From Trichosphaerium sp. ATCC 40318 (Eukaryota > Protista > Tubulinea), in assembly GCA_038496445.1 (NCBI GenBank), contig JALMLS010000021.1:1-52998 (forward strand): DNA of 52,998 nucleotides, given 5' to 3'. Shown one piece after another: positions 4,151 through 49,140 of this stretch (positions are counted from its first letter, which is position 1; each line of letters starts with the position of its first letter). The position numbers and the translations under genes are program-made. The notes below the pieces were generated by a model. It had not been told where the DNA came from, made no database searches, and worked only from the letters and a program-made list of their open reading frames with translations.

Positions 4151-5442
4151 ATGGCCGCCACAAATCAAACTTGGGAAGAGAAAGCACAAAACGAGCTAAA
4201 TATCAAAACAAAGCCAGTAGGTTCTTTAGGACAACTAGAAACATGGAGCAAGCAGTTATGCGCACTACAGCGTACGCTGAAGCCTTCGTACGTGTCGTAC
4301 TGTAACATTTGACACTAAGTCATGTAAGCGTGCAAGGCACTATGCTACTGTTTTGTGGGGACCACGGTGTTGCTGAAGAGAACGTAAGCAAGTTTCCAAA
4401 AGCTGTCACAAGAGAAATGATAAAGAACATCTCTAAAGAAGGCGCTGCAGTAAAGTACGCTATCACTAAACGCATAATCTTCACTTCATACAGCGATTCT
4501 CGACCGTTGCCACGGAAAAACTAACTTCCATCATGTGCTTATGGTTTGTAGCGTACTGTGCAAAGCAGCTGGTATCACATTGAAGACAATAGACGTTGGT
4601 GTTGATGCAGGAGACCTCCCAACGCTCCCTAGTATTGAAACTAAAAAGATAATGAACACAGGGACAAACAACTTTGTAAAAGAACCTGCCATGAACACTG
4701 AACAGTTCGACTACGCCTTGAATGTTGGAAAAGAAGCTGTTGAAGCAGCAATCAAAAGCGGATCTAATGTGATCTGCCTTGGAGAACTAGGCATTGCTAA
4801 CACCACAAGTGCCTCAGCCCTCGTCCGTTTAATGTGTCCTGATGATATATCAAGCAAAGACATCGTAGGACGAGGTACTGGAGTTGATGATGCTGGTGTA
4901 GCTAGAAAAGCTGCCGTAGTTGAGAAAGCCTTCCAAAAATATAAAGACTTGCCTAAAGTCCAAGAAAAAATCGCAGCTGTAGCTGGTGTACGTCATTGAC
5001 TTTACGGCACGTGATGTAACTTTTTTTTTAGTGCGAGATGGTTGCTATGATAGGTGCTTCGTTAGCTTGTATGGAGAAATCCATTGCCATCCTTGTTGAT
5101 GGTTTTATTACAATGTCATCAGTTTACGCTGCCTTGTCTATTGCCAAGGAGAGGAAAGATGATTTGAATTCGAACTGCTTCTTTTTCTCACATCAATCCG
5201 CTGAACAGGGTACAGTGCTTCTTGTGTCAAAGATAAAGGCGCTTTTAGGCCACTGTAAGCCAGCTTTGTCGCTTGGATTCCGTCTAGGTAAAACGATGTT
5301 TTTTGTTTACATTTTTGACTCATAACTTCTTGCAGGTGAAGGTTCTGGTGCTGCTACATGCTTTCCTTTATTGAGAGCTGCTGCTGCTATTATGGAAATG
5401 GCAACGTTTGGTCAAGCAAATGTGTCCGGTCCAAATGAATAG
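4151..5442 (+). CDS. cobT: Nicotinate-nucleotide:dimethylbenzimidazole phosphoribosyltransferase (CobT), 5 exons
   Basis: Motifs TKPVGSLGQLE, FCGDHGV, AAVNVL, DVGV, GTNNF, GELGIANTTSASA, GRGTG, DGFI, SHQSAEQG and RLGEGSGA, plus C-terminal MATF. GT-AG introns at 4288-4328, 4455-4551, 4988-5031 and 5288-5335 restore the frame. Confidence 0.93.
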
Positions 5443-8600: not shown

Positions 8601-11600
8601 TATACCAGTACCTTATGCTGATACTAGAAATCGTAAGCTCGATCATGCTGATCTCACAAACTTTATGATAATGAGTATGCTTCTTAATATGACGAGTTGT
8701 GCTCCTACAAACTTTATTTTGGAAAGATCTCCTACGGTACACTTTTATATGTAATACCAAATCTTAACAGTGTTCTAGAACCCTTCACAATATCGTTTGT
8801 GTAATGTTGATGCTGAATATGGATTCTTATCAGAAAGTGTTACTCTTACAGACACTGGAGAAGAAGTACGTCTTCTACAGTTTTCTTTTAAAATTGTGGG
8901 TTTTTTTAACTTTTTGTAGGTGAAGGAACTCAAGATTCTGAATATTCTTTATTGTATGCCACAGATGACTGCTGTCATTCCTATGGGTATATTACTGGAT
9001 TTTAGTATCATTCAACCTCGTGCTGATGTTTTTTTTCAATATTAGAAACCAGAGCAATTTTTATGCAGATTGATCCTAAAGACATTGTCCATTCATGGGC
9101 TACGTATTTGGTAGAACAAGAGGAGCGATACCGTACATTATTCACAAACAAAGAGATGGAAAAATGGTGTAAAGAAGGTACAGATATTACAAATTGTTGG
9201 TGTATTTCTGAGTGCTCTTGTAGGAAGTGTCTTGCCAATGATGTTCCAGCCTGACTGTCTACCTTTAATATACGACCGTCTTCGTCGTATAACGAAAGCG
9301 TACGCATCAGTGCGACTGTACAGGTTGTATTCATGATGTATTAGGTTCGAGAGTGATCCAAGAGGTTATAGTTTAACGCCAATCAAACTTCTTTGCCTTC
9401 TTGAGTCAGCAATGGGTAAATAGTTTCGCGTTGGATTTCTTTTAATGTTAATTGTATTCTTTAGGTTCTATCTATGAAGCACAACTAGAATTTAAACAGC
9501 AGACTCCACAAGACCGTTATAAGACTATTGCGCGACAGTATATGAGAAAATCAAGTCGAACAAATCCTTTCAAGTTTATTCCAAAGAGCATTAAAGCAGG
9601 TACGCAGTTTTTTTTTCTTTACTTTTTAAACAGTAGCTTGTTTGTGACACCTTTAGCCGATATGTCAAAGCATGGTCTTGCAACGCCATCTATAATGTTG
9701 ATGCAAGCAAAAGAGATTGCACAGCATGGTGATATGGTTAGAAATGCTTGCAATGAGATGATGAAAGGACAAACCACTTTGTTCTCTGAATTTAAAGTAC
9801 GCTTTTTATTTTCGTCACTTAAGTGACTGTTGTATTGTTCTTCTTTCCTAAACTATTTGTGTAGTCAGTTACTCTCAGAGAAGAGGCATTAGAATGGTGT
9901 ACATTTGGACCAAAGAAGTATAATGATGGTGAAGAGCGTGTCATTAAACTTCTAAAGAACGGAAAACGTATAAGTCTTCATCGACTCTCTCTTGAGAATT
10001 ATAAACTTCTAAGCAACGAGAAGCTTCTAGCTATTATCCGTAATAGTCCACAGTTAACAGAACTTAATGTACGGACACTTTCAAACAAGTCAAAAGCAGT
10101 TTGATGCCAAAACAGTCTGAAACTAAATATTTCCAAATAGGTTTCTGGATGTCCTGTTGATGAAAAGACAGTTCACCAAATTTCGAAGACATGCAACTTT
10201 CTTCAACGATTAGTTATAAAAGACACTGCAGTTACTGTCTGGGATCAATACTTTCCAAACTTGCGGTCATTGGCTATTCATAATTGTCAAATATTGAAAT
10301 TGCATTGTCCAAAGTTAGAGAGATTAGAACTATGTGGTAATATTAATGCACAAGATACTGAGAAGCTTGACTGTCCGAAACTACTAAGTATTGATTTTAC
10401 TGCTTGTGATCACTTCCCATTTTTGGGTATTCTACGTCTAGGAGGTTATAAAGAAGGTAAAGTTAACTTTTTTTGAGTTAGATTTTTTTTGTTCAAGTCT
10501 TTCTTTTTGCGCTTTTTTGTCCGCTTCAGAGAAGTTTCCTTAGATCCCTGAACACGAATTTCTAATACTGGTATTGTTGCAAGCATGTACTCATATTTTT
10601 GTTAGGTTTCAGAGCTAGTGGGTTACCAGGAGAAACAAAAACAATGCTTCTTGAGCATTTTAAAACTCATGATATTCTCAATGGAATGAATTGTACAGAG
10701 TTTTATGCAAAGTTCATTGATAAGCTACCTCTCGGTCGTGCTAATATCACAGATAAAAACCTATTGTCCACCCTTAACAGACTCGAAAACGTGAACCATG
10801 TAGATCTTCGCGGGTGCCCACTAATCACTGAATACGGTATTCAAGAGTTGAAGAAAAAATCGACTATCAAGACAATACAGCAATGGGGAGTTTTGGCTAA
10901 TTATGAAGGATGTGATGGACGTGTACCTGGTATTATTGTCGTTAGACATATAGGTAAGTTCGGGTGTAACAAAACGCACCAGAGAAGAAAAATTGCTTCG
11001 TTCTTATTTTTTCCTTTTTTTGTAGGTATCAATCTAGCTGCAACTGGAAGTACTCATAACTCTGTTGCTATATGGGATTTAAAAGAGATGAAGCTATTGC
11101 TATCTTGGAAAGCTCATAGTGGCCATGTTAGAGATATATGCGGTAAGCTTTATGTGTAAGTCCTTTTTTGCTAAACTCTTCTACAGGACTTCCTGATGGA
11201 AGGTTTGCCACTTGCTCTGATGATAAAACTATAAAATTATGGCATTACAATCGTGCTAAGAACACAAAAGAGCATTTATGCACTTTTGAAGGTACTACTT
11301 CTTCGGACAAACAGTTTTATGTTTTTCTGGATTGTATGTTGCTTCTTTATGTGACTTTTATTCTAGGTCATACTGGAAAGGTTGTGCGTATGTGTTTTAG
11401 ACATAACGGACAGATTATATCAGCTTCACATGATAATACCATTCGGATATGGGATATCTTTACAGGAGCTTGTATAAGTACTCTGACAGGTCATTCTACA
11501 TCTGTTCACTGTGTTGTTCTTGTATACACTGATATGTTGGCATCATGTGCTAGCAGGTACGGAAAGAGAAGGAAATTAAGACCTTGAGTTTGACAAATGC

Positions 11601-12757: not shown

Positions 12758-12901
12758 TGAGATATGTACCTGTATCATCTATCACAATACCTGCACGTAT
12801 AAAACCTGTTTCTATCTTCATCAGCTGGCGTCAATATTGCCATTAATTGACATTGATACAACTTCATTGTGTCCATATTGTGCTAGTAGAGTGAGATGTA
12901 C
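12758..12901 (-). pseudogene. Isolated degenerate copy of one ankyrin exon plus flanking intron sequence from the 23.6-27.4 kb array
   Basis: Reverse strand reads catctcactctactagcacaatatggacacaatgaagttgtatcaat...aatattgacgccagctgatgaagatagaaacaggttttatacgtgcag|gtattgtgatagatgatacaggtacatatctca. This is clearly homologous to the array unit, with indels. Confidence 0.85.
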
Positions 12902-12965: not shown

Positions 12966-14168
12966 TTATTGTCTGCACTGTGCTAGCACCTTGATGCCGT
13001 TGTTTGATTTACAATACGATAGATTAATAGATTGGGAACCCATCAATGCCTCTATAGCCTCGTCTGTAATCGATTTACAATAAGATAGATCAATAAAGTG
13101 GGCACCCACAAGCGCCTTTATGCCCGCATCTGTAATGGCTTGGCAATTGGACAGATCAATTCTGTGTACTCCTGTCAATGCCTTGACACCTTCATCTGTT
13201 ATAGATTGGCAATTAGATAGCTTGATAGTGTGTGCTCCAGCCAACGCCTTCACAGCTTTATCGGTTACCGTTGTAGATGATAAAGTGATATTGTGAACAC
13301 CTGCCAAAGCCATTACACCCTCATCAGTCATTGATTTACAATTACGCAGTTTGATAGTGTGTACACCTCTCAATGCCTTCAAACCCTCATCTGTTACTAG
13401 TGTGAATGATAAATTAATAGCGTGTGCACCTGCCAACGCCTTGATACCTTTGTCTGTTATTGATTGGCAATTAGATAGATCAATATTGTGTACACCAGCC
13501 AAAGCCTTGACACCCTCATCAGTTATTAATTTACAATTACGCAGTTTGATAGTGTGTACACCTCTCAATGCCTTCAAACCCTCATCTGTTACTAGTGTGA
13601 ATGATAAATTAATAGCGTGTGCACCTGCCAACGCCTTGATACCTTCATCTGATATTGTATGACAATTCCTTAGCTTGATAGTGTGTACACCTGTCATTGC
13701 CTTTACGCCTTCATCTGTAATTGATTTCCAATAAGATAGATCAATAGTGTGTACTCCTGCCAATGCCTTGATACTCTCATCTGTCAATGTTTGGCAATTA
13801 GATAGGTTGATATTGTGTACTCCAGCCAACGCCTTGATACCTTCGTCTGTTATTGATTTGCATCCCATTAGGTTGATAGTGTGTACTCCAGCAAGTAATT
13901 GCAGATGACAATTCATCACATCACTGAATTCGTACAAAGAAAGGGCGGTATTCTTCAGTAAAGGACTTCCTGAAAGGGTTTTCACTTCGGATTCTGTTTT
14001 AACAACTATTTCATTGTATCCGACATGGTTGTGGACGATATCTCGTAATAAGCGGCATGTTTGGGCTGATCGGAGAGTAAATGTCCCTTGTTTGAGAATA
14101 TGAGCTATTACTTCAACTGGAAGTGCTACAAGCTCAGTTTTCGTCGTTTTTGTGTGTTGTTCAGCCAT
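12966..14168 (-). CDS. Intronless F-box-like + leucine-rich repeat protein (~13 repeats of 23-24 aa)
   Basis: 400-aa ORF. N-term LVALPVEVIAHIL...SAQTCRLLRDIV is F-box-like. Repeats follow VHTIxLSNCxxITDEGIKALAG. Confidence 0.9.
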   Translation of the reverse strand: MAEQHTKTTKTELVALPVEVIAHILKQGTFTLRSAQTCRLLRDIVHNHVGYNEIVVKTESEVKTLSGSPLLKNTALSLYEFSDVMNCHLQLLAGVHTINLMGCKSITDEGIKALAGVHNINLSNCQTLTDESIKALAGVHTIDLSYWKSITDEGVKAMTGVHTIKLRNCHTISDEGIKALAGAHAINLSFTLVTDEGLKALRGVHTIKLRNCKLITDEGVKALAGVHNIDLSNCQSITDKGIKALAGAHAINLSFTLVTDEGLKALRGVHTIKLRNCKSMTDEGVMALAGVHNITLSSTTVTDKAVKALAGAHTIKLSNCQSITDEGVKALTGVHRIDLSNCQAITDAGIKALVGAHFIDLSYCKSITDEAIEALMGSQSINLSYCKSNNGIKVLAQCRQ

Positions 14169-14452: not shown

Positions 14453-16617
14453 TAGTGATGTTAAACGACTGAAGTCAAGTCGAGTCGAGTCGACTGACTC
14501 GCCAAGTCTACTCAAAATTTTTGGTATCGGCTGACTTGGCGACTTGGAAATGCCTCAATTTCAGAAAAAATTAAGAAAAATACAGCACCTAAGCACTTTG
14601 GTGGCATCACATTGGTGTGTCACGTTACCGCTTGCTCTATGTTGGTGCTGTGGCGCTTGTAGCGTATTCTCACAAAAAACTCATTTTTGTTTTCAAATAG
14701 AATTTTGAAAAGCTCAAAGGCAGTACCCTTTGAAGTTCAAGTCGCCAAGTCAGTCGTAAGTCGATTTTTTTGGGCGATGAGTATCCCTCATAAAGGGTGA
14801 GTCGCACTCAGATCTATTTTTAACCCTGACAGAAGCTAATTCAACCTGACTCACCATGCACAATCAACCACAATGAGCCCCAAAGTCAGTGTTGTCAAGT
14901 GTTGTAGATTGAAAGTGTGAAAATAAACTAATACATCTGGTGACTCATGACTCAACGTTGATTTTAACCCCGACTCGGGCATGTGACTGAACTAGAGTTG
15001 ACTCACCCACAGTACACCTAACACTGTATGAGTACAACCGGTGCACTGAGTCGCACTGGACACATGTTTTAACCCTGTAATTTGAAAGTGTGAAAATAAA
15101 CTAAAACATCTGGTGACTCATGACTCAACACATGTTTTAACCCCGACTCAACACATGTTTTTACCCCGAATCAGGCGTGTGACTGAACTAGAGTTGACTC
15201 ACCACAGTGAACCTAGTGCTGTATGAGTACCATCGGTGCACTGAGTCGTACTGGACACATGTTTTAACCCTGTAATTTGAAAGTGTGAAAATAAACTAAA
15301 ACATGTGTTGACTCATGACTCGACATTGATTTTAACCCTGACTTGGGCATATGACTGAACTAGAGTTGACTCACCACAGTGAACCCAACACTTTATGAGT
15401 ATAACCGGTGCACTGAGTCGCACTGGACACAAGTTTTAACCCCATAACAAAGTCGAGTGAACAAAAAGGTACTTTCGCTTGTGACTCGCAAAAAAATGGG
15501 AAGGTGGGCCTTACAGTGGCCATTCTGCGCCTTCTTATAACCTCGAGAGTTGCTGAGTCGACGTTCTGTGCGAGTGACCTCCGGTCGGGGTTAAAATTGC
15601 TCCTGAGTCCTACTCACACGCTCAATAGTGACTTGACGCTCGGATCACGCTGTTGACTCGACACATTCAAAAAAAAAAAATTGATATTCACCACAAAACA
15701 CGTGATTTACAATTCTTTGTTCTGTTTACTTACTATGTGTTTTTAGCGCGGTTGTTGTAAAAAAACACATGCTTTTATTAATGACAACTCGGGCATGTGA
15801 CTCAAGTTTTGTCATACAGGGATGGTGATAATATGACTTGAGGGTTCTGTCGGGGCTAAAAAGGTGCTCGAGTCGTGAGTGGTTTTTTTTTGTTCATTTA
15901 ACATTATGACTCCATGTCTGCCGGGGGTAAAAGTGGTGCCGAGTCAGACTCAACTATTTGAGTTGTAGCTGACTAAGGTTAAAGAGCGGGATCTCGTCAC
16001 AAAGGAGGTGTTTTTTTTTATAACACGTGACTAGTGTACATTTTACACTTGTGTCAGTCTTCACTATGACTAGGGCTTGGTGTCGAGTCATGAGTCAGTA
16101 CGCTTATTACTCCATGTATGTCAGGGGTAAAACCATGCTCAAGTCCTGAGTCAGTATGCACTATGACTCGGGTAAAAATGGTGCCGAGTCGTACTCAACT
16201 GTTCAAGGGGGTAAAAATGGTGCCGACTATTTGAGTTGTAACTGACTAAGGTTAAGAGTGGGATCAAGTCACAAAGGAGGTTTTTTGTTAACATGAGTGT
16301 ACACTTAACACTTTGGGACACTTGCGTCAGGTAAAAACATGCTCAAGTCACGAGTCAGTACGCGTTATGACTCCATGTCTGTTGGGGTAAAAATGGTGCT
16401 GAGTCGTACTCAGCAATTTGAGTTGGAACAGTGATAAGGTTAAAGAACAGGATAAAGTTGCAAGTGGGTTTTTATTAGGTGTACTTTTCACATGGTGACT
16501 AATGTGTGTCAGGGGTAAAAATGGGTGTTAGTCGTTACTCAACAATATTTACAATGGTACTATTTTTTTTGGGCGACTGAGTCGAGTCAGTCGAAAGTCG
16601 ACTCTTTAACACCACTA
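14453..16617. mobile_element. Non-autonomous hAT-like DNA transposon, 2165 bp
   Basis: 13-bp TIRs TAGTGATGTTAAA (14453-14465) and TTTAACACCACTA (16605-16617), one mismatch. Perfect 8-bp direct repeat TATGGGAT at 14445-14452 and 16618-16625. Dense subterminal GACTC/GAGTC motifs and no transposase ORF. Confidence 0.9.
14910..15445 (+). repeat. Internal ~173-195 bp tandem repeat (3 copies) within the hAT-like element
   Basis: tgaaagtgtgaaaataaactaa at 14910, 15083 and 15278, each followed by gactcatgactc...ttttaaccc...gactgaactagagttgactcacc...ggtgcactgagtcg. Confidence 0.9.
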
Positions 16618-18412: not shown

Positions 18413-21400
18413 ATGTTCAACGACACAGCGAAGCACTTCTACGGAAGTACTACTGCGTATACGCTTATTTGGTTCATTTTGCTCTTTGGAAGGCTTCAAT
18501 GTCAAGAAAATGACCCCGCAGGTGGTTTTACCGCGTATGATAACTCTTTTGCGCATTTATCCGCTTGTAGTAGTTTACTTTCACAGAAACTTACTGTTGG
18601 GTACATACGATTTCACCTAACAACTCTCTCAATGCGTACAACACAAATTACTGACTTTTTTTTCTTCGGTGTTACAGGTTTTTCAATGATTCGGATTCTC
18701 ATTCTTCTGTTTCTCTCACGTGTAATGCAACCGCACCAATACGTGATATAGCAGTATATGGATCACAAGTATTTATGATCCAAGATTCACGTGATATAGC
18801 TGTATACACGTTCAACACTACGCACGTGTCTAAAACAGCTACTTTGTTTATTTACCCAGTATGTTGTTTTTTTCTTATTTCTTTCCGTTCCGCTTTCTGT
18901 ACTACGAAAAAAGTGGTATTTGTGTAGTACTACGTTATGTTATCAGTCTTTTTGGACACTACGTATTGATTGTTCTTTTTAAAGGTGCATGGCCAGTTAA
19001 GAAATAAAATTGCTGCAAAGTACTCTACACTTGTCGTAAGCACTGAGAATGAAATGATTGTTTATAATACTACAGACTTAACTGCTATGCCATTAAGAAA
19101 CGTTTTTATGAAAACTTCACAGTTTGTAAAAACAGAACCTATCATATGGCACATAGGACTCGATGGTAAAAGAATAATGGTACTTCCAAGTTCTGGAAAA
19201 AAAACAAAAAAAGAAATTATTAGCCAAGCAAGTTTCCTCTGTACCAAATGACATAACAGAGACAGACATCGGCAGTTTTTTATCGCATTGCCAAAGGTTT
19301 GATTCTCATCTTTTCTCAGAATGGGATCTAATCAAGATCTTTTGAAGCGAAGGAACAAAGAGTCCTCAAAACTACTTCTTTTCTTATTAGTTGTCTTCAA
19401 TCATAACTTACTCTATTTGCAGGCTGTATGGCCCGATGGTGTTTTAACATCGTTGGTATTTAATGATACATTAACAGTTAGTGTTATTGGGGAAGAAGAA
19501 GGTAGAATCCTAGATTGTATCGTTGATAAACCTTATCAAGTAAGGTGGTTTACAAAACGTGAAGGTGCAGTGTATCTAGAACAATTGTATATTGGGTTTG
19601 ATTTAGCAGTGCAAGGTGAACATGGCGGTTATGTTTTAGGTAATTGTGGTAGCAATAAAACACGCAAGTGTTTGTATGTCTTAACAAAGGATAAAAATGG
19701 GTTTGTGTACTTAAAGAAGGTATTTGTTATGTACTTGTTTTTTTTTAATTTCTTTGTTAGATAGACAATGGAACAGTTCGTATTGTTGCTCCAACTGTTT
19801 ATTATGATAGTATAGAGGTTATTTACAGGAAAAAATTTTTGAGGATTTTTCACGCCAAAGATGGGTTACATGTTTATACAGAAAATAATTTTAGTGTTGT
19901 TCAAAATCACCTTTGGAAAGTGCCTGTGCCAAAAGGACATCAACACACACCTCTAAATCTTATTCCGTGTAATCCTGGTACTTATAAAGATACAACAGAT
20001 ATTGGACCATGTATTTTATGCCCTTATGGAACTCATCAGCCTAACCATGGTACAACAAACAAATCTTTTCTTTTTTGGATTTTAAACTTACCTTCGTTAG
20101 GTTCTGAGTCATGTATACCCTGTAAATATCCTGATGAATGTAGAGGGGGAGCAAGAATACCATCAAAGCTCTCCAAGGGCAACCCATCGTCGTTTTATCC
20201 TTTCAAACCAACGTTTCAAGCATCTTCCCAACAGCAATTTCTGAGGATTATTGGACACCCAGATTCTGTTGTGTTCTTCTCATTAACAATCACTCTCGTA
20301 ATTGCTTTGCTTGCTATTGGTATTACTTCATCTATACTAATTTTATGCGGTTGCGAAAACTTTTTTGCTGTAAGACTATTATGTGCTATTGATATATCAA
20401 AGCAACTCGTTCTTCATACCTCACCTGTTTGGAAAGGTGATATTTTTGGCGGATTGGTTACTCTTGCCATAGTAGGCATGTGCTTGCTTGCTATTAGTGC
20501 TGAGACACACATTTATTATACATACAAAGCAACGCCTTTTGATATGAATAGTACAATTCACAAAGGAGTAAATGCAAAAAGATCAAGAACACTTAGAAAC
20601 CCTCAAGCGGGATTTATTGATGATACAACAATGGAACACTATGAAAACCTACAACAGTAAGAGTGTTGTTTGATAAATACTAAATTCTACATCATGGCTT
20701 ATTCCTCTATTTTAGAACAACACTATTTTTAAATATCACGTGGTACGTTTAATTCCAACAATCTTTCTCATCTCTTGCCTTCTAGGAGTGACTTGTTTAT
20801 TTTTGTTCCTGGTTGCGCTATTCAAGTGTTTAGTACTGATGACTTACTCAATGTCAAAACGTATTCACTTAACAACACACAAAGGTATTACCAAATTCTA
20901 TTGTTTATCCTATTTTTAGTTTTAACTACTTTGTTAGTGTAGTTATCGAAGCAAAACTTCAAACGTCCTATGTAATTCAGTTGATAGCATGTCCAGCATC
21001 ATATAATGCAATTTCACTTAGAGCGTATACAAACTTGACTCACCGTACTTGTTTTTTTTGACCAGATTTGTTTTTGGTTCTAATAATGGGTTTTCTTAGC
21101 AACATCTGTCGAAGTACATATGCCTTCAAAAGGCCAATACCTTCCTTACCAAGATCACTCTATTGATATTATAACGACAGCAGTAATTAGAAATACACAA
21201 GGATATACTGCATCACGTGTAGATGGTGAGCATGAAAACTTTAAAAGAAATTTTGATGTTTTTTACTAGTTTTGATTGACGTTCTCGTAGAGTATTTAGG
21301 ATTGATTGCAAAGCGTTTTAAGTCACAAGGAAAGAGAATGGAATGTTGCAACGATACAGAAATTTATGCTTTTAACAATAATATAATGGAGTCTCAGTAA

Positions 21401-23466: not shown

Positions 23467-26400
23467 ATGACAGAATCGCAGAATGACAAAAACCAACATT
23501 TAGAACAGGAAGAACCAACCAACAACATCCATCTCCCCGTAATTGAAAGTGTGTTTGCTGCTGCAGGTTTGTAATGCTTGCTAAGCAAATAGTTGACAAA
23601 GTACAGCAACAAATGGCTACAATGAAGTTGTTTCAGTATTACCCAATGCCAACACCAATATTGATGCTGTTGATAAAAATGGAAAGACAGCTTTGATATA
23701 TGCAGGTAACATGATATGATGAGATACAACATGTAAATATCTCACTATACTATTTAGCACAAAAAGGACACAATGAAGTTGTATCAACCATACTCAAAGC
23801 CAACGCCAATATTGATTTTGTTGATAAATATAGAAGGACAGCATTAATATATGCAGGTAACATGATATGATGAGATACACATCTCACTATACTATTTAGC
23901 ACAAAAAGGCCACAATGAAGTTGTATCAATCTTACTCAACGCCAACGCCAATATTGATTTTGTTGATAAATATAGAATGACAGCATTAATATATGCAGGT
24001 AACATGATATGATGAGATACAACATGTACATATCTCACTCTACTATTTAGTACAAAAAGGAGACAATGAAGTTGTTTCAACATTACTCAACGCCAATGCT
24101 AATGTTGATGTTGTTGATACATATGGAAGGACAGCATTAATATGTGCAGGTAACATGATATGATGAGATACAACATGTAATTATCTCACTATACTATTTA
24201 GTACAAAAAGGACACAACGAAGTTGTTTCAATATTACTCAATGCCAATGCCAATGTTGATTCTGTTAATAAATATGGAAAGACAGCTTTAATATATGCAG
24301 GTAACATGATATGATGAGATACACATCTCACTATACTATTTAGCACAAAAAGGCCACAATGAAGTTGTATCAATCTTACTCAATGCCAATGCTAATATTG
24401 ATGTTGTTGATAAAAATGAAAAGACAACTTTAATATATGCAGGTAACATGATATGATGAGATACAACATGTAATTATCTCACTCTACTATTTAGCACAAG
24501 AAGGACACAATGAAGTTGTTTCAATCTTACTCAAAGCCAACGCCAATATTGATTCTGTTGATGACGATAGAAGGACAGCTTTAATATATGCAGGTAACAT
24601 GATATGATAATACAACATGTACACATCTCACTCTACTATTTAGCATGGAATGGACACAATGAAGTTGTATCAACCCTACTCAAAGCCAACGCCAATGTTG
24701 ATTCTGTTGATGAATATAGAAAGACAGGTTTAATATATGCAGGTAACATGATATGATGAGATACAACATGTACACAGCTCACTCTACTATTTAGCACAAA
24801 AAGGCCACAATGAAGTTGTATCAATCTTACTCAATGCCAACGCCAATATTGATTTTGTTGATGAAGATAAAAGGACAGCTTTAATATATGCAGGTAACAT
24901 GATATGATAATACAACATGTACACATCTCACTCTACTATTTAGCATGGAATGGAGACAATGAAGTTGTATCAATCTTACTCAAAGCCAACGCCAATGTTG
25001 ATTCTGTTGATGAAGATAGAAAGACAGGTTTAATGCATGCAGGTAACATGATATGATGAGATACAACGTGTACATATCTCACTCTACTATTTAGCACAAA
25101 AAGGCCACAATGAAGTTGTATCAACCTTACTCAAAGCCAACGCCAATATTGATTCTGTTGATGTATGCAAAATGACAGCATTAATATATGCAGGTAACAT
25201 GATATGATGAGATACAACATGTACATATCTCACTCTACTATTTAGCATGGAATGGACACAATGAAGTTGTATCAACATTACTCAAAGCCAATGCTAATGT
25301 TGATGTTGTTAATAAATATGGAAGGACAGCATTAATACGTGCAGGTAACATGATATGATGAGATACAACATGTACATATCTCACTCTACTATTTAGCACA
25401 AAAAGGACACAATGAAGTTGTATCAATCTTACTCAATGCCAACGCCAATATTGATTTTGTTGATGAAGATAAAAGGACAGCTTTAATATATGCAGGTAAC
25501 ATGATATGATGAGATACAACATGTAAATATCTCACTCTACTATTTAGCATGGAATGGACACAATGAAGTTGTATCAACATTACTCAATGCCAATGCTAAT
25601 GTTGATGTTGTTAATACATATGGAAGGACAGCATTAATATGTGCAGGTAACATGATATGATGAGATACAACATGTACATATCTCACTATACTATTTAGCA
25701 CAAAAAGGAGACAATGAAGTTGTATCAACCCTACTCAAAGCCAACGCCAATATTGATTCTGTTGATGAAGATAGAATGACAGCTTTAATGTGTGCAGGTA
25801 ACATGATATGATGAGATACAACATGTAAATATCTCACTCTACTATTTAGCACGGAATGGACACAATGAAGTTGTATCAACCTTACTCAAAGCCAACGCCA
25901 ATGTTGATTCTGTTGATAAATATAAAATGACAGCATTGATATATGCAGGTAACATGTAAGATACAACATGTACATATCTCACTCTACTATTTAGCACAGA
26001 ATGGAGACAATGAAGTTGTTTCAACATTACTCAATGCCAATGCTAATGTTGATGTTGTTGATACATATGGAAGGACAGCATTAATATATGCAGGTAACAT
26101 GATATGATGAGATACAACATGTAATTATCTCACTCTACTATTTAGCACAAGAAGGAGACAATGAAGTTGTATCAACCCTACTCAAAGCCAACGCCAATGT
26201 TGATTCTGTTGATAAATATGGAAATACAGCTTTGATATGTGCAGGTAACATGATATGATGAGATACAACATGTACATATCTCACTCTACTATTTAGCACA
26301 GAAAGGAGACAATAAAGTTGTTTCAACATTACTCAACGCCAATGCCAATGTTGATGAAGGTGGAATGACAGCATTGATATATGCAGGTAACATGTAAGAT

Positions 26401-29400
26401 ACAACATGTACATATCTCACTCTACTATTTAGCACAAGAAGGACACAATGAAGTTGTTTCAACATTACTCAATGCCAATGTTAATGTTGATGTTGTTGAT
26501 ACATATGGAAAGACAGCATTAATATATGCAGGTAACATGATATGATGAGATACAACATGTAATTATCTCACTCTACTATTTAGCACAAGAAGGACACAAT
26601 GAAGTTGTATCAATCTTACTCAACGCCAATGCCAATGTTGATGTTAATACATATGGAAGGACAGCATTAATATATGCAGGTAACATGATATGATGAGATA
26701 CAACATGTAATTATCTCACTCTACTATTTAGCACAAGAAGGACACAATGAAGTTGTATCAACCCTACTCAAAGCCAACGCCAATGTTGATTCTGTTGATA
26801 AATATGGAAGGACAGCTTTGATATATGCAGGTAACATGATATGATGAGATACAACATGTACATATCTCACTCTACTATTTAGCACAAGAAGGACACAATG
26901 AAGTTGTATCAACCCTACTCAAAGCCAACGCCAATGTTGATTCTGTTGATGAAGATAGAAAGACAGGTTTAATATATGCAGGTAACATGATATGATGAGA
27001 TACAACATGTACACAGCTCACTCTACTATTTAGCATGGAATGGACACAATGAAGTTGTATCAACCCTACTCAAAGCCAACGCCAATGTTGATTCTGTTGA
27101 TGAAGATAGAAAGACAGGTTTAATATATGCAGGTAACATGATATGATGAGATACAACATGTACATATCTCACTCTACTATTTAGCACAAAAAGGCCACAA
27201 TGAAGTTGTATCAATCTTACTCAACGCCAATGCTAATATTGATGTTGTTGATAAAAATAGAAAGACAGCTTTGATATATGCAGGTAACATGATATGATGA
27301 GATACAACATGTAATTATCTGACTCTACTATTTAGCACAAAAAGGACACAATGAAGTTGTTTCAATCTTACTCAAAGCCAACGCCAATATTGAAGTTGTT
27401 GATAAAGCTGGAAATACAGCTTTGATTTATACTACAGGTAATATCACTAGTGAGATAAAAATATGTTTATTTACTATCATTCGAGATTTTGACAAAATAT
27501 CAATGCTAGTGTTGAAATTAATCAAACCTAACGCAAATAATATTGATACTATTGATGAAAGTGAAACCAACAAGGATTCAGGTATTAGCACATTACAAAA
27601 AAATTTGGTGAAATAATAGCTAACGCTGTAAGTAGTAGTAACTCCGTGCCAAAGAAAGTGGCAAGACTTTATGTTCATTTTAATTAGAGAAGTGGTATCA
27701 AATACACCCTCAGCTGTTGAAAAATTCATAACTTTCTTAAAATACTGTCCAAGTGGTAAACAATGCCATCCACTGTGGAGATCCTGTAAAAAGCACTATT
27801 CACGCAACATATGGGGGAGAAACCAGCTTGAAGAATGGCTTCACCGTTTGGTACACTTTGTTGAATACCAATACCTTAAACTAACCATACAACGTTTAGC
27901 CAACACAGTATTATTTCAAACTGGCAATGGAAAAAGGTATTCGTCATTTAATTTGTTCTGCATGCAATCCCAAAGTTGTATTGCCTCCAGTACGATATCT
28001 TCACTGTTAACATCTACAAACAACATTCTTTTTCTACAGGAATTCTGGAAACAAGATGGGCAATCAATGCAAGGTTTTCTGCATGATATGCCCAATGATG
28101 CTTGGGTTAATAACAGTCAAGATGATTCCTTGAAAGAAGAGTGTACTGAAGGTAAGAAGCGTGTGGTGAAAATACTAAAAACAGTTTTCAAAAGGATTAA
28201 AAGGTGAAAACGCATGGAGTCTAAATCCGCGATTGTATTTTGCAAATAATTGGGATAGCTCTAACACGTGCGTTCAATTACTTTATTAGTTCTTATATTA
28301 CAAAAAGAGGCATTGTTGCAAAGGCGACACACTACAAAACACTGAATCTGCTTGATGACAACGACAAAGTGGCAGTCAGAGAATTCAACATCCTCAAACA
28401 GGAGATGTCAAAACTACATGGCTGTAACAATTACAATATCATTGAAGCGACTCTCGTTTATAATGACATCTTGACAGAAAACTTTGGTTGCGTCAACGAA
28501 ATACTGACGCACAGACATCAGTACGGTTACTCCACACTTCATAGGCATTTTGTGATTCTAAACATGCATCTATTAGAGAACTGCCCAAGTTGTTTAAAAA
28601 ACAAAATTGGAAACAAAGTATCTACAAGGAACACAAAGAGACTGTGCACCAAAAGTACAACACCCTCACTGCTTTTAATGATTGTTATACTGAAAAAAAG
28701 GATAAGGTAATGTTCTCGGTACTCTTGCACTACAAACATTTTATTTAGTTACCAGTGATATTGATGGTCCATGGAACAAGCGAAGAAGCAGCTTACAGTA
28801 TTGTAAAGGCTGGTTTTGGAACTGTGAGTTCTTTAGATGCTGGTTACTATGGTCAAGGGATATACTTCACTGTACGTTATTACTCAATTTTTTCAGGTGG
28901 TCAATATTCATTTTCGGCAATAGAGAAGCATAAAGTATGCAGCTTCATATGATTTAAAAGGAAGAACTGTAAAAACACTGGTTTTAAGTCTTGTTACTCC
29001 TGGGAACGTTTATCCGGTAAGCAAACAATAATATTGATGTGGATATTCTTTACTTACTTGATAAAAAGCATGATCCTCTCATAGCAGGCAAAGATGGTAC
29101 CAAAAACAGCAATGAAAGCTTACGTGGAAAGCCAATAAAACCAGGGTATCAAAGTCACTATGCCTTGGTAGACCGCACTGGTAAACTCCTACCAGCAGAT
29201 AAACTTGAAGATGCAGTATACGATGAGCTGGTAGTGGCACAAGGTACACTCAGCAATACAATTGAAAAATGTGATTAAATTCTCAAACACTTTTTTAGAT
29301 ACTCAAGCTGTTGCTCGGTACATCATCAAAGTTGAACGCAAAAAACGTCAAACTACAAAAGGCAAGAAAGTTGATAAAAAGACAAAGAAAGAGAAAGGCG

Positions 29401-29783
29401 ATAATGAACAAACTGCAGCTCAAGCTTCAGAAGTAGATACTGAAGGTTCAGCTGGCGAGCTATCTGATGATGAACTATCTGATTCTGACGACACTTTTAT
29501 TTCTAACAGGTACAATTTTATAGTATCGTTTAAACTTAAGTTTTGTACTAGAAAACTATGGGCTGCCCATGATGATTCAACTGATGATGAACAATCAAGC
29601 TATAATTATGGGAATCAGCAACAACACATTATCGAATTGACAAAAGCCAATGCAAATAAAGAACAGCACATTACTGAATTGACTGAAAGCATCAACAACC
29701 TAAAGCAAGACAACACTAGCCTAAAGAAGAGGAACGCCATTCTTCTGGCAAAAATAGCTCTCCTTGAAAGTACAGCAAAGTAA
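23467..29783 (+). CDS. Ankyrin-repeat (26 single-repeat exons) + helical linker + PARP-like ADP-ribosyltransferase + coiled-coil protein
   Basis: ATG at 23467. Exons decode A[QWR][KNE]G[HD]NEVVS[IT]LL[KN]ANAN[IV]DxVDxxxxT[AG]LIxA with no in-frame stops seen. ART motifs MVHGTS, DAGYYGQGIYFT, KYAASY, VTPGNVYP, GYQSHY and YDELVV. C-terminal heptads end at 29783. Confidence 0.9.
23607..27437 (+). repeat. Tandem array of ~151-bp exon+intron units (typically 99-nt ankyrin exon + 52-nt intron), 26 exons and 25 introns
   Basis: Intron consensus gtaacatgatatgatgagatacaacatgtacatatctcactctactatttag is repeated between exons. All are phase 1 (GCA G|CA). Confidence 0.95.
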
Positions 29784-30095
29784 TTCTAATGCGTCTGTTG
29801 TAAACACACAACATTTATCAATAAACAACCACAGCTTAGTTTTTCATAAATTGTACTTGTTTCAAATTCATGGCAAATAAGTTGTTTTGGCGCACTGAAG
29901 ATAAAGGGTACTTATAAGTGCAACATTCAATTGTAATTTGTTCAACTTTGGGAGGTAAGAGATGTATGTTGTAGATAAAATAACAAGATGCCATTGTGTG
30001 TATTGTTGAAATTTTATTGATGCCACTCAGGCCAATAATGTTGTAATTTATGACTTACTGCATAAATTTAAGCCCAATTTTTTTCCACAATACAC

Positions 30096-31559: not shown

Positions 31560-32232
31560 TTGTGATTGCTTTCACAGGTTTGTATTGGTTGGTGCGTAAA
31601 TAGCTAACCAACCATAGCAACAAATGGCCATGCTGAAAATATACCAAAGTTAATCGAATCGAATGGCAATATTGATGCTGTTGATAGATAGCTATGGACA
31701 GGTTTGATATGTGCAACAGGTAATGACAAAGGGAGAGATACAATACAAGTCGTTCACACCATATTTATTACAATACATGCCAATGTTGAGGCTGCTAATG
31801 AAGGTGGATACAGCTTTATTATGAGCGGTTAATCTTGGTTGATGAGATAAGAATATGTTCCTCACATTGTTATTTAGCAGGGGAAGGATAGAACCAAATA
31901 GTATCAGTGCCAATGCCAGGCCAATATTGACGCCAGTACTAAATATTGAATAAGGAAATACAGCTTTAATTTGTGCAGGTAACATGATATGATGAGATAC
32001 AACATGTACATATCTCAAAATACTATTTAACATACAAAGGACACAATGAAGGTATCAATGTTAACTAATGCCAACGCCCATATTGATGCTGTTGATCAAA
32101 GTGGAAACACAGCTTTGGTTAATGCAGGTAATATCAGCAGATCATACATTATGGGGTTCAATAAAATCGATCAATATTTGTCAAGCCAATACCGATATTG
32201 AGGCTGTTGATAAAGCTGGAAACACATTTTTA
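31560..32232 (+). pseudogene. Decayed paralog of the ankyrin-exon gene (about 5 degenerate ankyrin exons)
   Basis: Contains homologs of the first intron (cag|gtttgta...ag|caacaaatggc), one array intron at ~31979 with the acceptor AG mutated to AA, and the last intron start (gcag|gtaatatca). Exons have frameshifts and stops. Confidence 0.85.
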
Positions 32233-32509
32233 ACAGTCTTGACAGAACTTACACGAACTAAGCGAAAGTGACAAGGTCTGGTGCTGCAAATTTTTCTTTA
32301 ATTTATAACACGACCTCTTGGCTTTTGCTAAAAATTCAAACAAGCTTACTTTTTGACTATTTAGTCAGCGTAGGCATTCATGGATGGTAATAAAACTACT
32401 TCGCTAGAGATTTGTATGTAGCAGCTGCCGCTTTAGCTGCTGTTTTTTCTTGTCATTTTGAGAGTGTTACAATAAAATGGGAGATTCAGATTATGTACTG
32501 TATCTCTAT

Positions 32510-46945: not shown

Positions 46946-48376
46946 TTATTTCCCTATTCTTGGCTTAAGCATTCGGTTTAAAGATCCATCTTCATTCCAT
47001 TCCTTGTACAGACCTTTCTCTAAACCATTGATAAACTCACATTCAACATGTTGCTGTCCATTTCTATGCCATTGTTTAAAAACACCATCCTTTTTACCAT
47101 CATTAAATGTACAATGAATATGGAGTTGTCCATTATCATAATACTGTTTGAAATCCCCGTTCCTTTCATCATCAGTGTAAATACACTCCAACTCAATCAC
47201 ACCATTCTCATGCCATTGCTTACTCTCACCTAATTTTTTACCATTTACATACATACACTGCATAGTAAGTTGTCCATTCTCATACCACTGCTTAAACATA
47301 CCATTTTCCTTACCATCAACATACGTACTTTGTATTTGTAGTTGTCCATCCTCGTACCACTCTTTATACTCGCCATTCTCTTTACCATCAACAAACATAC
47401 TCTGTATAATAATATTACCATTTTCATACCATTCTCTATGCATACCATTTTCTTTACCACCAGAAAAAGTACACTGGATATTAAGTTGTCCATTGTCATA
47501 CCATTCTTTGTACTCACCATCTATTTCACCACCAACATAAGTACACTCTATTCCTAGTGTACCATTATCATGCCATTGCTTGAAATGTCCATTTTCTTTG
47601 TTGTTAACATAAACAATTTGGATACTAAGTTGTCCATTCTTATGCCATTCTTCGAATAATCCTTCTTTTTTATCATCAACAAACATCCACTTGCATTTAA
47701 GTTGTCCACTCTTAAACCACTTGAAATACTCTCCTTGTTTTTTACCATTAACAAACATACATTGTCCAAGCAACTGGCCACATTCATAATACTGCTTGAA
47801 CTCACCATGCTTCTTACCATCAACAAAAGTAAACTCAGTCCTCAGTTGTCCACCCAAATACCAACTTCTATAATCACTATTTTCTTTACCATTTACATAA
47901 GTAAAGTTTCTCTGTAGTTGCCCATTCTTGAACCACTGTTTAAACTCACCATCTTTTTTATCATTAACATACATATACTCTGTCTCAAGCTGTCCGTCCT
48001 CACACCATTGTTTGAATTCACCATTTTTTCTCCCATTGGCATACATACACTTTATATTAATCTGTCCATTCTTATACCACGTCTTGTAATACCCATTCAA
48101 CTTCCCATTGATAACATTGAATTGTTGCTCTATTTTTCCGTCTGGGAACCATTTTAACCAAATACCATTGGGTACAAGCTCATTATTGTAGTGAGTATTG
48201 ATTGCAGCTCTTTTTGATAGCACGTGATACTTATTAAACACTTCTGCATTGAAAGTACATAAATATACTTGAATATCACTTGGTAGGTCTAATATACTGC
48301 TACAAGTAGTATCTTGTACAAGACATAGACCTCTCTTTGGCAGCACGTCAATTTCTGAGTTATCTAAGGTAACCAT
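46946..48376 (-). CDS. Intronless MORN-variant (MORN_2/YwqK-like) repeat protein with F-box-like N-terminus
   Basis: About 16 24-aa repeats G.KNGEFKQWYENGQL...C.YV. N-term SILDLPSDIQVYLC..F...LSK. First ATG at 48376. Confidence 0.9.
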   Translation of the reverse strand: MVTLDNSEIDVLPKRGLCLVQDTTCSSILDLPSDIQVYLCTFNAEVFNKYHVLSKRAAINTHYNNELVPNGIWLKWFPDGKIEQQFNVINGKLNGYYKTWYKNGQINIKCMYANGRKNGEFKQWCEDGQLETEYMYVNDKKDGEFKQWFKNGQLQRNFTYVNGKENSDYRSWYLGGQLRTEFTFVDGKKHGEFKQYYECGQLLGQCMFVNGKKQGEYFKWFKSGQLKCKWMFVDDKKEGLFEEWHKNGQLSIQIVYVNNKENGHFKQWHDNGTLGIECTYVGGEIDGEYKEWYDNGQLNIQCTFSGGKENGMHREWYENGNIIIQSMFVDGKENGEYKEWYEDGQLQIQSTYVDGKENGMFKQWYENGQLTMQCMYVNGKKLGESKQWHENGVIELECIYTDDERNGDFKQYYDNGQLHIHCTFNDGKKDGVFKQWHRNGQQHVECEFINGLEKGLYKEWNEDGSLNRMLKPRIGK

Positions 48377-49140
48377 CAATAAATTAGATTACAACATGAA
48401 AACAAACTAATCAACAAACGTTTCTAGCGCTATATTGGAGTTTTAGAGCATTAAAAAATACCCTCATTGCATGTAACAAGCTAGGTATACTACTTATGCT
48501 AATCTCCGATGAGAACGGAAATGTATAGCTGTGAAAAATATGATGCAAGGGTTTTTTTCAAAAAGTAATTGGTTTCACACTTGTACAACATTGATGTGGT
48601 TTTTGTGTTAGGCCGTAAAAGGAGATGATTTATAAGGCGAGGATGTCTTATCTAGGGTTGCTGGGAGCTATGTAACGAAGATTTTGTACCGCTATCATAA
48701 AGGAAAAAAAAAATCACGTGGACTAATTACGCGACTCTTTATCATCTCTTTTTACGGTCTAACAGTTGCCCTCATAAATAGACGGTTCATATTCATTTTG
48801 TTGTGGGTTTTCGTTAAAACTGAAGTAGACGTAAAAAAGTGTGGTATTTGCGCGTATTAAATAGCGGTAACGATGTTTTTGCTTTAAACGAGTAAAAAAC
48901 AATTGGGTTTTGTTTTTCATGAGAAGCTCTTTTCTGCGATGTATTTTGTCTTTTGCGTACGTGAACTCATCTTTGTCGACTGAATTGCGTCTGATGGACT
49001 AATAAAGCCTATTGGTTAGTTTTATAGTATTTTAAACAAATAATAAACTAGAGCATACCGAAGCTATACTGCCTTGTTTGTGCGAACTTCAATCTATTAA
49101 CTAGAGGTACACTACCTCCTCAATTTAGTTCAGGAGCCAA

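Follow-up and report, generated by a model that had tools for sequence, protein, structure and literature searches.

Gene structure and expression

The window analyzed here, a stretch of 52,998 nucleotides from the marine amoebozoan Trichosphaerium sp. ATCC 40318 (contig JALMLS010000021.1), carries on its forward strand a gene in which a long array of ankyrin repeats, encoded one per exon, is joined to a PARP-type ADP-ribosyltransferase domain (Table 1). Splicing of its 39 exons gives an unbroken frame of 1476 codons, from the ATG at 23467 to the stop codon at 29781-29783. The frame is kept over 4431 nt of coding sequence, and the introns have canonical GT..AG borders. No signal-peptide-like hydrophobic stretch is visible in the translation of the exon 1 leader. 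The Lys-rich part of the charged linker that follows the catalytic domain resembles, and might serve as, a nuclear localization signal. A motif of the C-terminal tail (...RNAILLAKIAxLES) is kept in P0001, a transcript-derived relative of 590 aa.

Transcription was assessed by aligning RNA contigs from two public runs (X1 and X2) to positions 23800-29799. Remnants of adapters and of a template-switch oligo at the contig ends mark both sets as cDNA. The contigs document GT..AG removal of the introns at 27990-28039, 28152-28194, 28268-28307, 28521-28576 and 28707-28748, and the intron at 29510-29551 is spliced in both runs. Also removed are the array intron at 27284-27335 and an intron at approximately 27582-27632. 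The introns at 27438-27485, 27851-27899, 28872-28923, 29017-29068 and 29244-29298 were set by frame logic. In run X1, 18 of the 38 contigs match the window at ≥99% identity. The remaining ones are 95-99% identical with many substitutions, and thus come from paralogs or from another strain.

Both P0001 and a second transcript-derived protein, P0002 (450 aa), can be aligned in frame with the 588 C-terminal residues of the spliced protein. The exception is an 11-residue insertion beside the intron at 29017-29068, which is outside the coverage of the RNA contigs. The gene is intact and expressed.

Table 1 Coordinates of the ankyrin-PARP gene, its parts and its decayed copies in the window.
Feature	Position	Strand	Description and basis
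Ankyrin-PARP gene	23467-29783	+	39 exons, 38 introns of 40-56 nt, 1476 aa
Exon 1	23467-23566	+	Start codon and 33-aa N-terminal leader, ends in phase 1 (translation)
Intron 1	23567-23606	+	40 nt, unique sequence, differs from array type
Ankyrin cassette array	23607-27437	+	26 phase 1-1 exons, 25 near-identical introns of 43-52 nt
Intron 3' of last cassette	27438-27485	+	48 nt, diverged relative of array intron; splice placed by frame and homology
Degenerate ankyrin-like capping exon	27486-27581	+	96 nt, phase 1-1; translation DFDKISMLVLKLIKPNANNIDTIDESETNKDS
Linker, four exons	27633-28267	+	aa 921-1084, Cys-rich motif CPSGKxC...LWxxC
PARP-type ADP-ribosyltransferase catalytic domain	28308-29243	+	Five exons, about aa 1085-1329
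Low-complexity linker	29299-29509	+	Lys-rich, then acidic (translation and alignment with P0001 and P0002)
C-terminal coiled-coil tail and stop codon	29552-29783	+	Weak matches to CENP-H, GIT_CC and bZIP_2
Decayed partial paralog	31560-32260	+	Without PARP part (blastn, tblastn, sequence)
Solo decayed ankyrin cassette	12760-12900	-	Intron-like flanks, just downstream of F-box/LRR gene (blastn, tblastn)

The ankyrin cassette array

Tandem Repeats Finder reports a single array at 23619-27430 (period 151, 25.5 copies, 87% matches, score 5310). The repeat unit of 151 nt consists of a 99-nt phase 1-1 exon and a 52-nt intron. A regular-expression parse recovered all 25 array introns in the form GTAACATG...TATTTAG. 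Their full form is GTAACATGATATGATGAGATACAACATGTACATATCTCACTCTACTATTTAG, from which they depart by a few substitutions and by four small deletion variants. The first array exon lies at 23607-23705 and the last at 27336-27437 (102 nt). The usual exon length is 99 nt (23 of 26), the others being 90, 96 or 102 nt.

The exon consensus is A-x-x-G-H-N-E-V-V-S-x-L-L-x-A-N-A-N-x-D-x-V-D-x-x-x-x-T-A-L-I-Y-A, and the 33-residue ankyrin motif (Pfam clan CL0465) is borne by all 26 exon translations. The intron splits a G|CA codon or, in two exons, a G|TA codon. Splice sites are identical from cassette to cassette. All 26 exons are phase 1-1 with lengths divisible by 3, so that skipping, duplicating or swapping cassettes is neutral to the reading frame.

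A preliminary description of this DNA, made from its letters, had already proposed 26 phase 1-1 ankyrin exons, near-identical introns and a PARP-like domain. That architecture is confirmed by the repeat finder, the intron parse, the gene model and Pfam. The description also held that the intron splits a motif LxxA|AxxG, seen here as L-I-Y-A|A-x-x-G, and that cassettes can be rearranged in frame, which follows from the exon lengths and phases.

The catalytic domain and linkers

Exon 35 alone (41 aa, LPVILMVHGTSEEAAYSIVKAGFGTVSSLDAGYYGQGIYFT) matches Pfam PF00644 with E=2.5e-4 and 21.1 bits, where the gathering cut-off of the family is 26.7 bits. Homologs score above this cut-off: P0001 with 30.9, P0002 with 36.5 and P0012, a more distant ankyrin-PARP protein, with 52.7 bits. 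The window protein aligns with P0001 and P0002 along the whole PARP domain, and exon 33 is 71% and 69% identical to them, respectively. The H-Y-E triad is recognizable as His in MVHGT, Tyr in GQGIYFT and Glu in YDELVV. This Glu, which aligns with the third position of the PARP12 triad, does not vary in a seven-sequence alignment (A1) and is conserved at ≥90% in a 19-row alignment (A2).

A profile of seven family members, searched against PDB, finds the catalytic domain of PARP12 first (E=4e-8), followed by PARP10, ZAP, PARP4 and PARP15. Single-exon sequence searches of PDB returned spurious TALE-repeat matches and one weak PARP10 match, and were set aside. An AlphaFold model of residues 165-415 of P0001, built from 19 sequences, has a pLDDT of 85.8 and a pTM of 0.85. 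An earlier attempt on a seven-sequence alignment of linker plus PARP domain was discarded (pLDDT 46.5). Foldseek matches the P0001 model to PARP3, tankyrase 1/2, PARP1/2, PARP12 and PARP4 (E about 1e-11, probability 1.00). The top matches have target-normalized TM scores of 0.64-0.74, and tankyrase, PARP3, PARP1 and PARP12 rank about equally. The top 50 listed matches are all PARP catalytic domains, and 379 matches have E <= 0.001. The sequence and the model of the homolog point to an active-looking PARP-type ADP-ribosyltransferase.

Lacking from the exon pieces, P0001 and P0002, as judged by Pfam, are SAM, WGR, PARP regulatory (PRD), NACHT and NB-ARC domains. The linker exons, within a 230-residue stretch between the ankyrin and PARP regions, have no Pfam family; their Cys-rich motif is conserved in P0001. 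An ESM Atlas search of the linker gave PARP-associated leads below threshold only. No second PARP or C-terminal module occurs elsewhere in the window. The 1476-aa product is a cytosolic or nuclear protein in which an ankyrin solenoid of 26-27 repeats is followed by the Cys-rich linker, the H-Y-E PARP-fold domain, the charged linker and the coiled coil.

Relatives and decayed copies

A HMMER search with exon 33 of 1.84 billion representative proteins found two real relatives, P0001 and P0002. Across the databases, 18 proteins are related at E <=1e-5, all from metatranscriptomes, MMETSP or Logan assemblies. The closest named relatives, P0017 and P0019, are 72% and 67% identical to P0001 and similarly close to the window protein. 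Their source is MMETSP0405, which is Trichosphaerium sp. ATCC 40318. Paralogs, whose absence the preliminary description had named as an argument against its proposal, thus exist on the evidence of these transcripts.

The MMETSP-derived contig that encodes P0001 (L003) has ankyrin repeats upstream, and this related array matches Pfam Ank and Ank_2 with E about 1e-37. A run of N at 730-745 separates its ankyrin and PARP parts; the appearance of two open reading frames in this contig is a scaffolding gap and not biology. A protein search with the ankyrin part of L003 retrieved generic ankyrin proteins only and no transcript of the window array. Neither the intron motif nor a conserved exon motif was matched in scans of metagenomes. 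The ankyrin-PARP family is, as far as these sequences indicate, multi-copy and lineage-restricted. Some relatives (P0008 and P0013) carry two PARP-like modules of the family in tandem. Judging from sequence, the family probably includes inactive members or members of altered activity.

Decayed cassettes, also anticipated by the preliminary description, were located at two places (Table 1). The partial copy downstream of the gene (31.56-32.25 kb) consists of an intron-1-like sequence (31578-31616), about four cassettes, an in-frame stop and a piece resembling the last exon. A splice acceptor has been lost there (TTTAAC). Within this copy, positions 31979-32017 are identical to the live array intron at 39 of 39 nucleotides, and the exons there are about 82% identical. 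This suggests that the live array may recently have gene-converted the dead copy at 31979-32017.

Variation among cassettes

The 23 full-length cassettes all differ in nucleotides and encode distinct peptides in 22 cases. Invariant positions number 14 of 33; the most variable are, in exon numbering, 24, 26, 27, 21, 25, 3 and 2. Designed ankyrin repeat proteins (DARPins) provide an a-priori set of ligand-contact positions. Alignment to the designed-ankyrin consensus equates exon positions 2, 3, 22, 24, 25 and 27 with DARPin library positions 13, 14, 33, 2, 3 and 5. These six positions carry 40% of the positional entropy (permutation p=0.002). At their codons, pairwise nonsynonymous difference (pN) is 0.27 vs a synonymous difference (pS) of 0.19 (permutation p for pN=0.005), compared with 0.09 vs 0.18 at the other 27 codons. 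The mean pairwise distance of the array introns is 0.048 per site. The pattern fits selection for diversity at a putative ligand-contact surface over a conserved framework, with a modest excess.

Like DARPins, the window array holds a fixed framework that varies at repeat positions 2, 3, 5, 13 and 14, and five of the six library positions are among its seven most variable ones. DARPin position 33, however, is invariant in the window array, where position 32 and the turn glycine (position 4) vary instead. DARPins are designed, with 2-3 internal repeats, whereas the window gene is natural and has 26.

All four allele combinations occur in 308 of 465 pairs of variable sites, including pairs 1 nt apart. 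Linkage between sites (r2) falls from 0.17 at distances of up to 30 nt to 0.10 at 31-60 nt and to 0.05, the chance level, at 61-100 nt. The decay is the same within exons and across the intron, and we therefore rejected the idea that recombination breakpoints are confined to introns. The array is a fine-scale recombination mosaic, in which short-tract conversion or recurrent change would reshuffle the variants. Since linkage decays inside a single exon, the exon block is not the shuffled unit, and the earlier view of the exon as a shuffled module is not supported.

Cassettes have a mean pairwise identity of 75% (aa) and 86% (nt), and nearest neighbors are 92-99% identical in nucleotides. No higher-order repeat period was detected, the nearest-neighbor cassettes being scattered along the array. 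Compared with cassettes of L003, those of the window are 48% identical, and the L003 repeats are 63% alike among themselves. The higher identity within the window array than between arrays would indicate homogenization within arrays or independent expansion of each.

Comparison with known systems

The preliminary description likened the locus to fungal NLR repeats and to exon-shuffled genes of brown algae, and both analogies prove apt. Fungal NLRs of Podospora and other species contain ankyrin, TPR and WD repeats of high internal conservation (PMC4986451). They resemble the window gene in having near-identical tandem ankyrin repeats within a multi-gene family, variability on the concave surface formed by inner helix and beta-hairpin, and recombination between repeats as a source of diversity. 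Positive selection acts on the concave side of fungal NLR ankyrin repeats with high internal conservation (PMC4986451; Dyrka et al., 2014). Unlike the window gene, in which the repeats are split one per exon and the effector is a C-terminal PARP domain, fungal NLRs have NACHT or NB-ARC domains and arrays of continuous coding sequence. At 75% identity, the window cassettes are also below the level used for the fungal repeats, which is at least 85% amino acid identity over at least 100 aa (PMC4986451). With neither NACHT nor NB-ARC in the gene, we ruled out its identity as an NLR.

Brown-algal ROCO-LRR and NB-ARC-TPR genes (Zambounis et al., 2012, PMC3341825; Teng et al., 2024, PMC11378527) share with the window gene the encoding of one repeat per phase-symmetric exon of constant length. 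Also shared are dead cassettes nearby, including some on the opposite strand, and variability of the binding face; the algal genes have been proposed to be diversifying receptors. They differ in repeat type and output: LRR (72 nt) or TPR with a Roc-COR GTPase or NB-ARC domain, in Stramenopiles, compared with ankyrin (99 nt, phase 1) and PARP in Amoebozoa. The introns of the window array, unlike those of the algal arrays, are about 50 nt long and nearly identical to each other. Alternative splicing of one-repeat exons is known from Ectocarpus ROCO genes (PMC11378527).

Fusions of ankyrin repeats with PARP domains are known from at least two other origins, the tankyrases and the WGR- and PRD-containing proteins of clade 1A (PMC2964712). 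Tankyrase 1/2 (PARP5a/b; clade 4) have, as predicted for the window protein, a long N-terminal substrate-recruiting ankyrin region and a multimerization element, together with a C-terminal H-Y-E PARP domain that lacks WGR and regulatory domains. In contrast to tankyrase, which has a SAM domain between ankyrin and PARP regions, the window protein has no SAM, a coiled coil after the PARP domain and an extra Cys-rich linker. The repeats of tankyrase are not near-identical, unlike the window cassettes, and by sequence profile the window catalytic domain is nearest to PARP12, PARP10 and ZAP and not to tankyrase. Identity as a tankyrase was ruled out by the missing SAM and by the profile nearest to PARP12. 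Clade 1A proteins, known from Dictyostelium, fungi and Paramecium (PMC2964712), likewise place ankyrin repeats N-terminal to PARP and extend to Amoebozoa, but have the WGR and PRD domains, neither of which was detected in the window gene. Without SAM, WGR or PRD, the window protein is neither a tankyrase nor a member of clade 1A. From its domain content, the gene looks like a further independent ankyrin-PARP fusion.

Dscam arrays are similar in being tandem homologous, frame-compatible exons that encode a binding surface. Dscam cassettes are mutually exclusive, whereas those of the window would be used additively. Nothing significant of the docking/selector architecture of Dscam was found in the window gene beyond one weak complementarity, and the short RNA contigs yielded no evidence of isoforms.

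Proposed evolution and function

On balance, we favor the view that the gene is an intact, expressed member of a lineage-restricted ankyrin-PARP family, with an array that is diversified in the germline and in which variability at contact positions is kept or favored. The pattern of variation is consistent with birth of the array by tandem duplication, after which unequal crossing-over and short-tract gene conversion would have kept the cassettes similar. Amino acid differences would be kept or favored at the ligand-contact positions of the beta-hairpin and inner helix. Given the mosaic structure together with the contact-site differences, diversity would arise in the germline over evolutionary time, between cassettes and between paralogs. 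By the logic of the domains, the variable ankyrin surface may recruit protein ligands, the coiled coil may multimerize the protein, as SAM does in tankyrase, and the PARP domain may ADP-ribosylate the bound ligand, itself or a neighbor. On the same logic, a role in conflict or non-self recognition is plausible as a hypothesis. The sensor-effector gene proposed in the preliminary description stands in part: a diversifying recognition module fused to an ADP-ribosyltransferase fits the variation at ligand-contact positions, but the gene, having neither NACHT nor NB-ARC, is not NLR-like in architecture, and the immune or allorecognition role and the ADP-ribosylation of captured targets are hypotheses.

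Several points weigh against this view. Tests of the PARP fold and of the Pfam threshold used homologs about two-thirds identical to the window protein and not the window chain. In several relatives the triad His is replaced by Gln, which makes activity across the family uncertain. The ligand, the activity and the role are all inferred. Omega at the a-priori sites is modest (about 1.4), and it comes from repeats of a single array, which are not independent of each other. Surface residues under relaxed constraint could account for the contact-site variation. Variable sites make up 5 of 14 synonymous vs 10 of 43 intron sites, which is not a significant difference (Fisher p=0.49). The claim of much stronger conservation in introns than at silent exon sites is thus true by pairwise distance (0.048 vs about 0.18) and is not significant by counts of variable sites, and the seemingly much higher conservation of introns than of exons mostly reflects nonsynonymous change.

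These last points also speak for a rival account, in which the gene encodes an ordinary regulatory or scaffold PARP of tankyrase-like housekeeping function, unconnected with conflict, in which the array expanded recently and surface residues drift neutrally. Housekeeping roles have been served by ankyrin-PARP fusions of repeated origin (PMC2964712), and surface positions are the least constrained in any ankyrin protein. Neutral drift is harder to reconcile with the contact codons, where pN (0.27-0.30) exceeds both pS (0.13-0.19) and the intron distance of 0.048, or with the near-complete distinctness of the encoded peptides over a near-invariant framework. A housekeeping gene would also not be expected in a family that is multi-copy, turning over and taxonomically as narrow as the search of representative proteins indicates. 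We regard this account as doubtful, while giving it real weight.

Splicing of the array

A further possibility is that the array is a combinatorial repertoire, in which cassettes are stochastically skipped or back-spliced, perhaps through pairing of introns, to give many surfaces per gene as in Dscam or the LRR exons of Ectocarpus ROCO genes. Skipped forms would stay in frame, the splice sites are interchangeable among cassettes, and one-repeat exons are alternatively spliced in brown algae (PMC11378527). The RNA contigs do contain junctions between non-adjacent cassettes, at 24591>26431, 24591>27334 and 26244>27340. However, one side of each of these joints rests on 21-22 nt, a stretch common to several cassettes, and many of the contigs, at 95-99% identity, come from paralogs. 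Two other joints, 26979>23898 (X1) and 26828>25395 (X2), lie exactly on exon borders and run backward. Backward joints cannot be produced by exon skipping in cis, and the simplest single explanation of skipping and backward joints alike is therefore that the transcripts come from paralogous or allelic arrays in which the cassettes are ordered differently; circular RNA is an alternative. Retention of an array intron introduces a stop after four codons.

The intron that follows the last cassette (27438-27485) shows complementarity to the array intron along about 36 nt, at an RNAduplex energy of -23.2 kcal/mol; among 500 dinucleotide-shuffled sequences, 1 did as well. For the remaining introns of the gene, the energies of pairing with the array intron are -6 to -14 kcal/mol. 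Either residual homology of a quasi-palindrome or a looping element may lie behind the complementarity, and we treat it as a weak lead and not as a mechanism. Self-pairing of the quasi-palindromic array intron is within the range of shuffles (67 of 500), and its hairpin is no more stable than those of shuffled sequences (z 0.13 to -1.1). Neither intron 1 nor the 5' region showed Dscam-like RNA pairing. For introns as short as about 50 nt, recognition is by intron definition, under which exon skipping is uncommon. The decay of linkage inside exons also argues against cassettes as discrete modules. We consider a spliced repertoire improbable.

A bolder variant supposes a repertoire generator in a multinucleate amoeba, where pairing among the quasi-palindromic introns, including the complementary one that follows the last cassette, loops cassettes out of the pre-mRNA, or where repeat recombination differs among nuclei. 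Many ankyrin-PARP variants per cell or clone would then come from one locus, and the backward and skipping joints would be real products. We give this idea still less credence.

That the array is a mis-assembled or collapsed repeat, or the gene a pseudogene, is very hard to credit. In its favor are the liability of tandem arrays to assembly errors, the decayed copy 2 kb downstream and the 11-aa insertion relative to homologs, which lies where RNA coverage is missing. Against it, the exons remain in frame throughout with canonical introns, the distinctness of every full-length cassette excludes copy-paste collapse, RNA contigs match at ≥99% with confirmed splice junctions, and the array measures only 3.8 kb; the published Trichosphaerium assembly, from which the window probably comes, was built from Nanopore and PacBio reads (PMC10521059).

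Genomic context and significance

The Trichosphaerium genome has a size of 70.8 Mb, a GC content of 37.7%, 8.7 introns per gene and a mean intron length of 75 bp, and is reported to be enriched in MORN and F-box genes, which are partly virus-derived (PMC10521059). The window has a GC content of 34-42% and likewise contains MORN and F-box/LRR genes. An open reading frame of 400 aa at 12966-14168 (minus strand) is F-box-like at its start and contains many LRR_6 repeats (Pfam E=4e-40). Its tandem unit measures 66 nt (Tandem Repeats Finder 13063-13886, 12.6 copies, 68% matches), and it represents another repeat-cassette gene near the ankyrin locus. A reading frame of 477 aa at 46946-48379 (minus strand) consists of MORN_2 repeats (Pfam E=1e-53), with a 72/144-nt periodicity at 47202-47577. 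Also present on the plus strand are a 195-nt tandem repeat at 14962-15343 (2 copies, 89% matches), which contains a 23-nt repeat at 15122-15173, and three further reading frames. These are an exon-sized frame at 4535-4999 with a match to DBI_PRT (CobT-type phosphoribosyltransferase, E=4e-36), a WD40 frame at 11168-11587 (E=1.6e-16) and an ephrin-receptor-like Cys-rich frame at 19839-20660 (E=1.4e-5).

We found no paper on an ankyrin version of such arrays or on the ankyrin-PARP family, and ankyrin or PARP genes are not mentioned in the published Trichosphaerium genome paper (PMC10521059). Outside animals and plants, the known cases of repeat-receptor diversification are the recombining repeats of fungal NLRs and the one-repeat-per-exon LRR/TPR arrays of brown algae. 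As a putative germline-diversified ankyrin-PARP gene, the locus described here unites both features in Amoebozoa, a third lineage; its repeat type, ankyrin, is likewise a third one, and its output differs, being a PARP-type ADP-ribosyltransferase. If the ankyrin surface does select the targets of ADP-ribosylation, the family would be a natural counterpart of a DARPin library that is coupled to an enzyme, and would then offer an entry point to non-self recognition in free-living amoebae, which live with bacteria and giant viruses.

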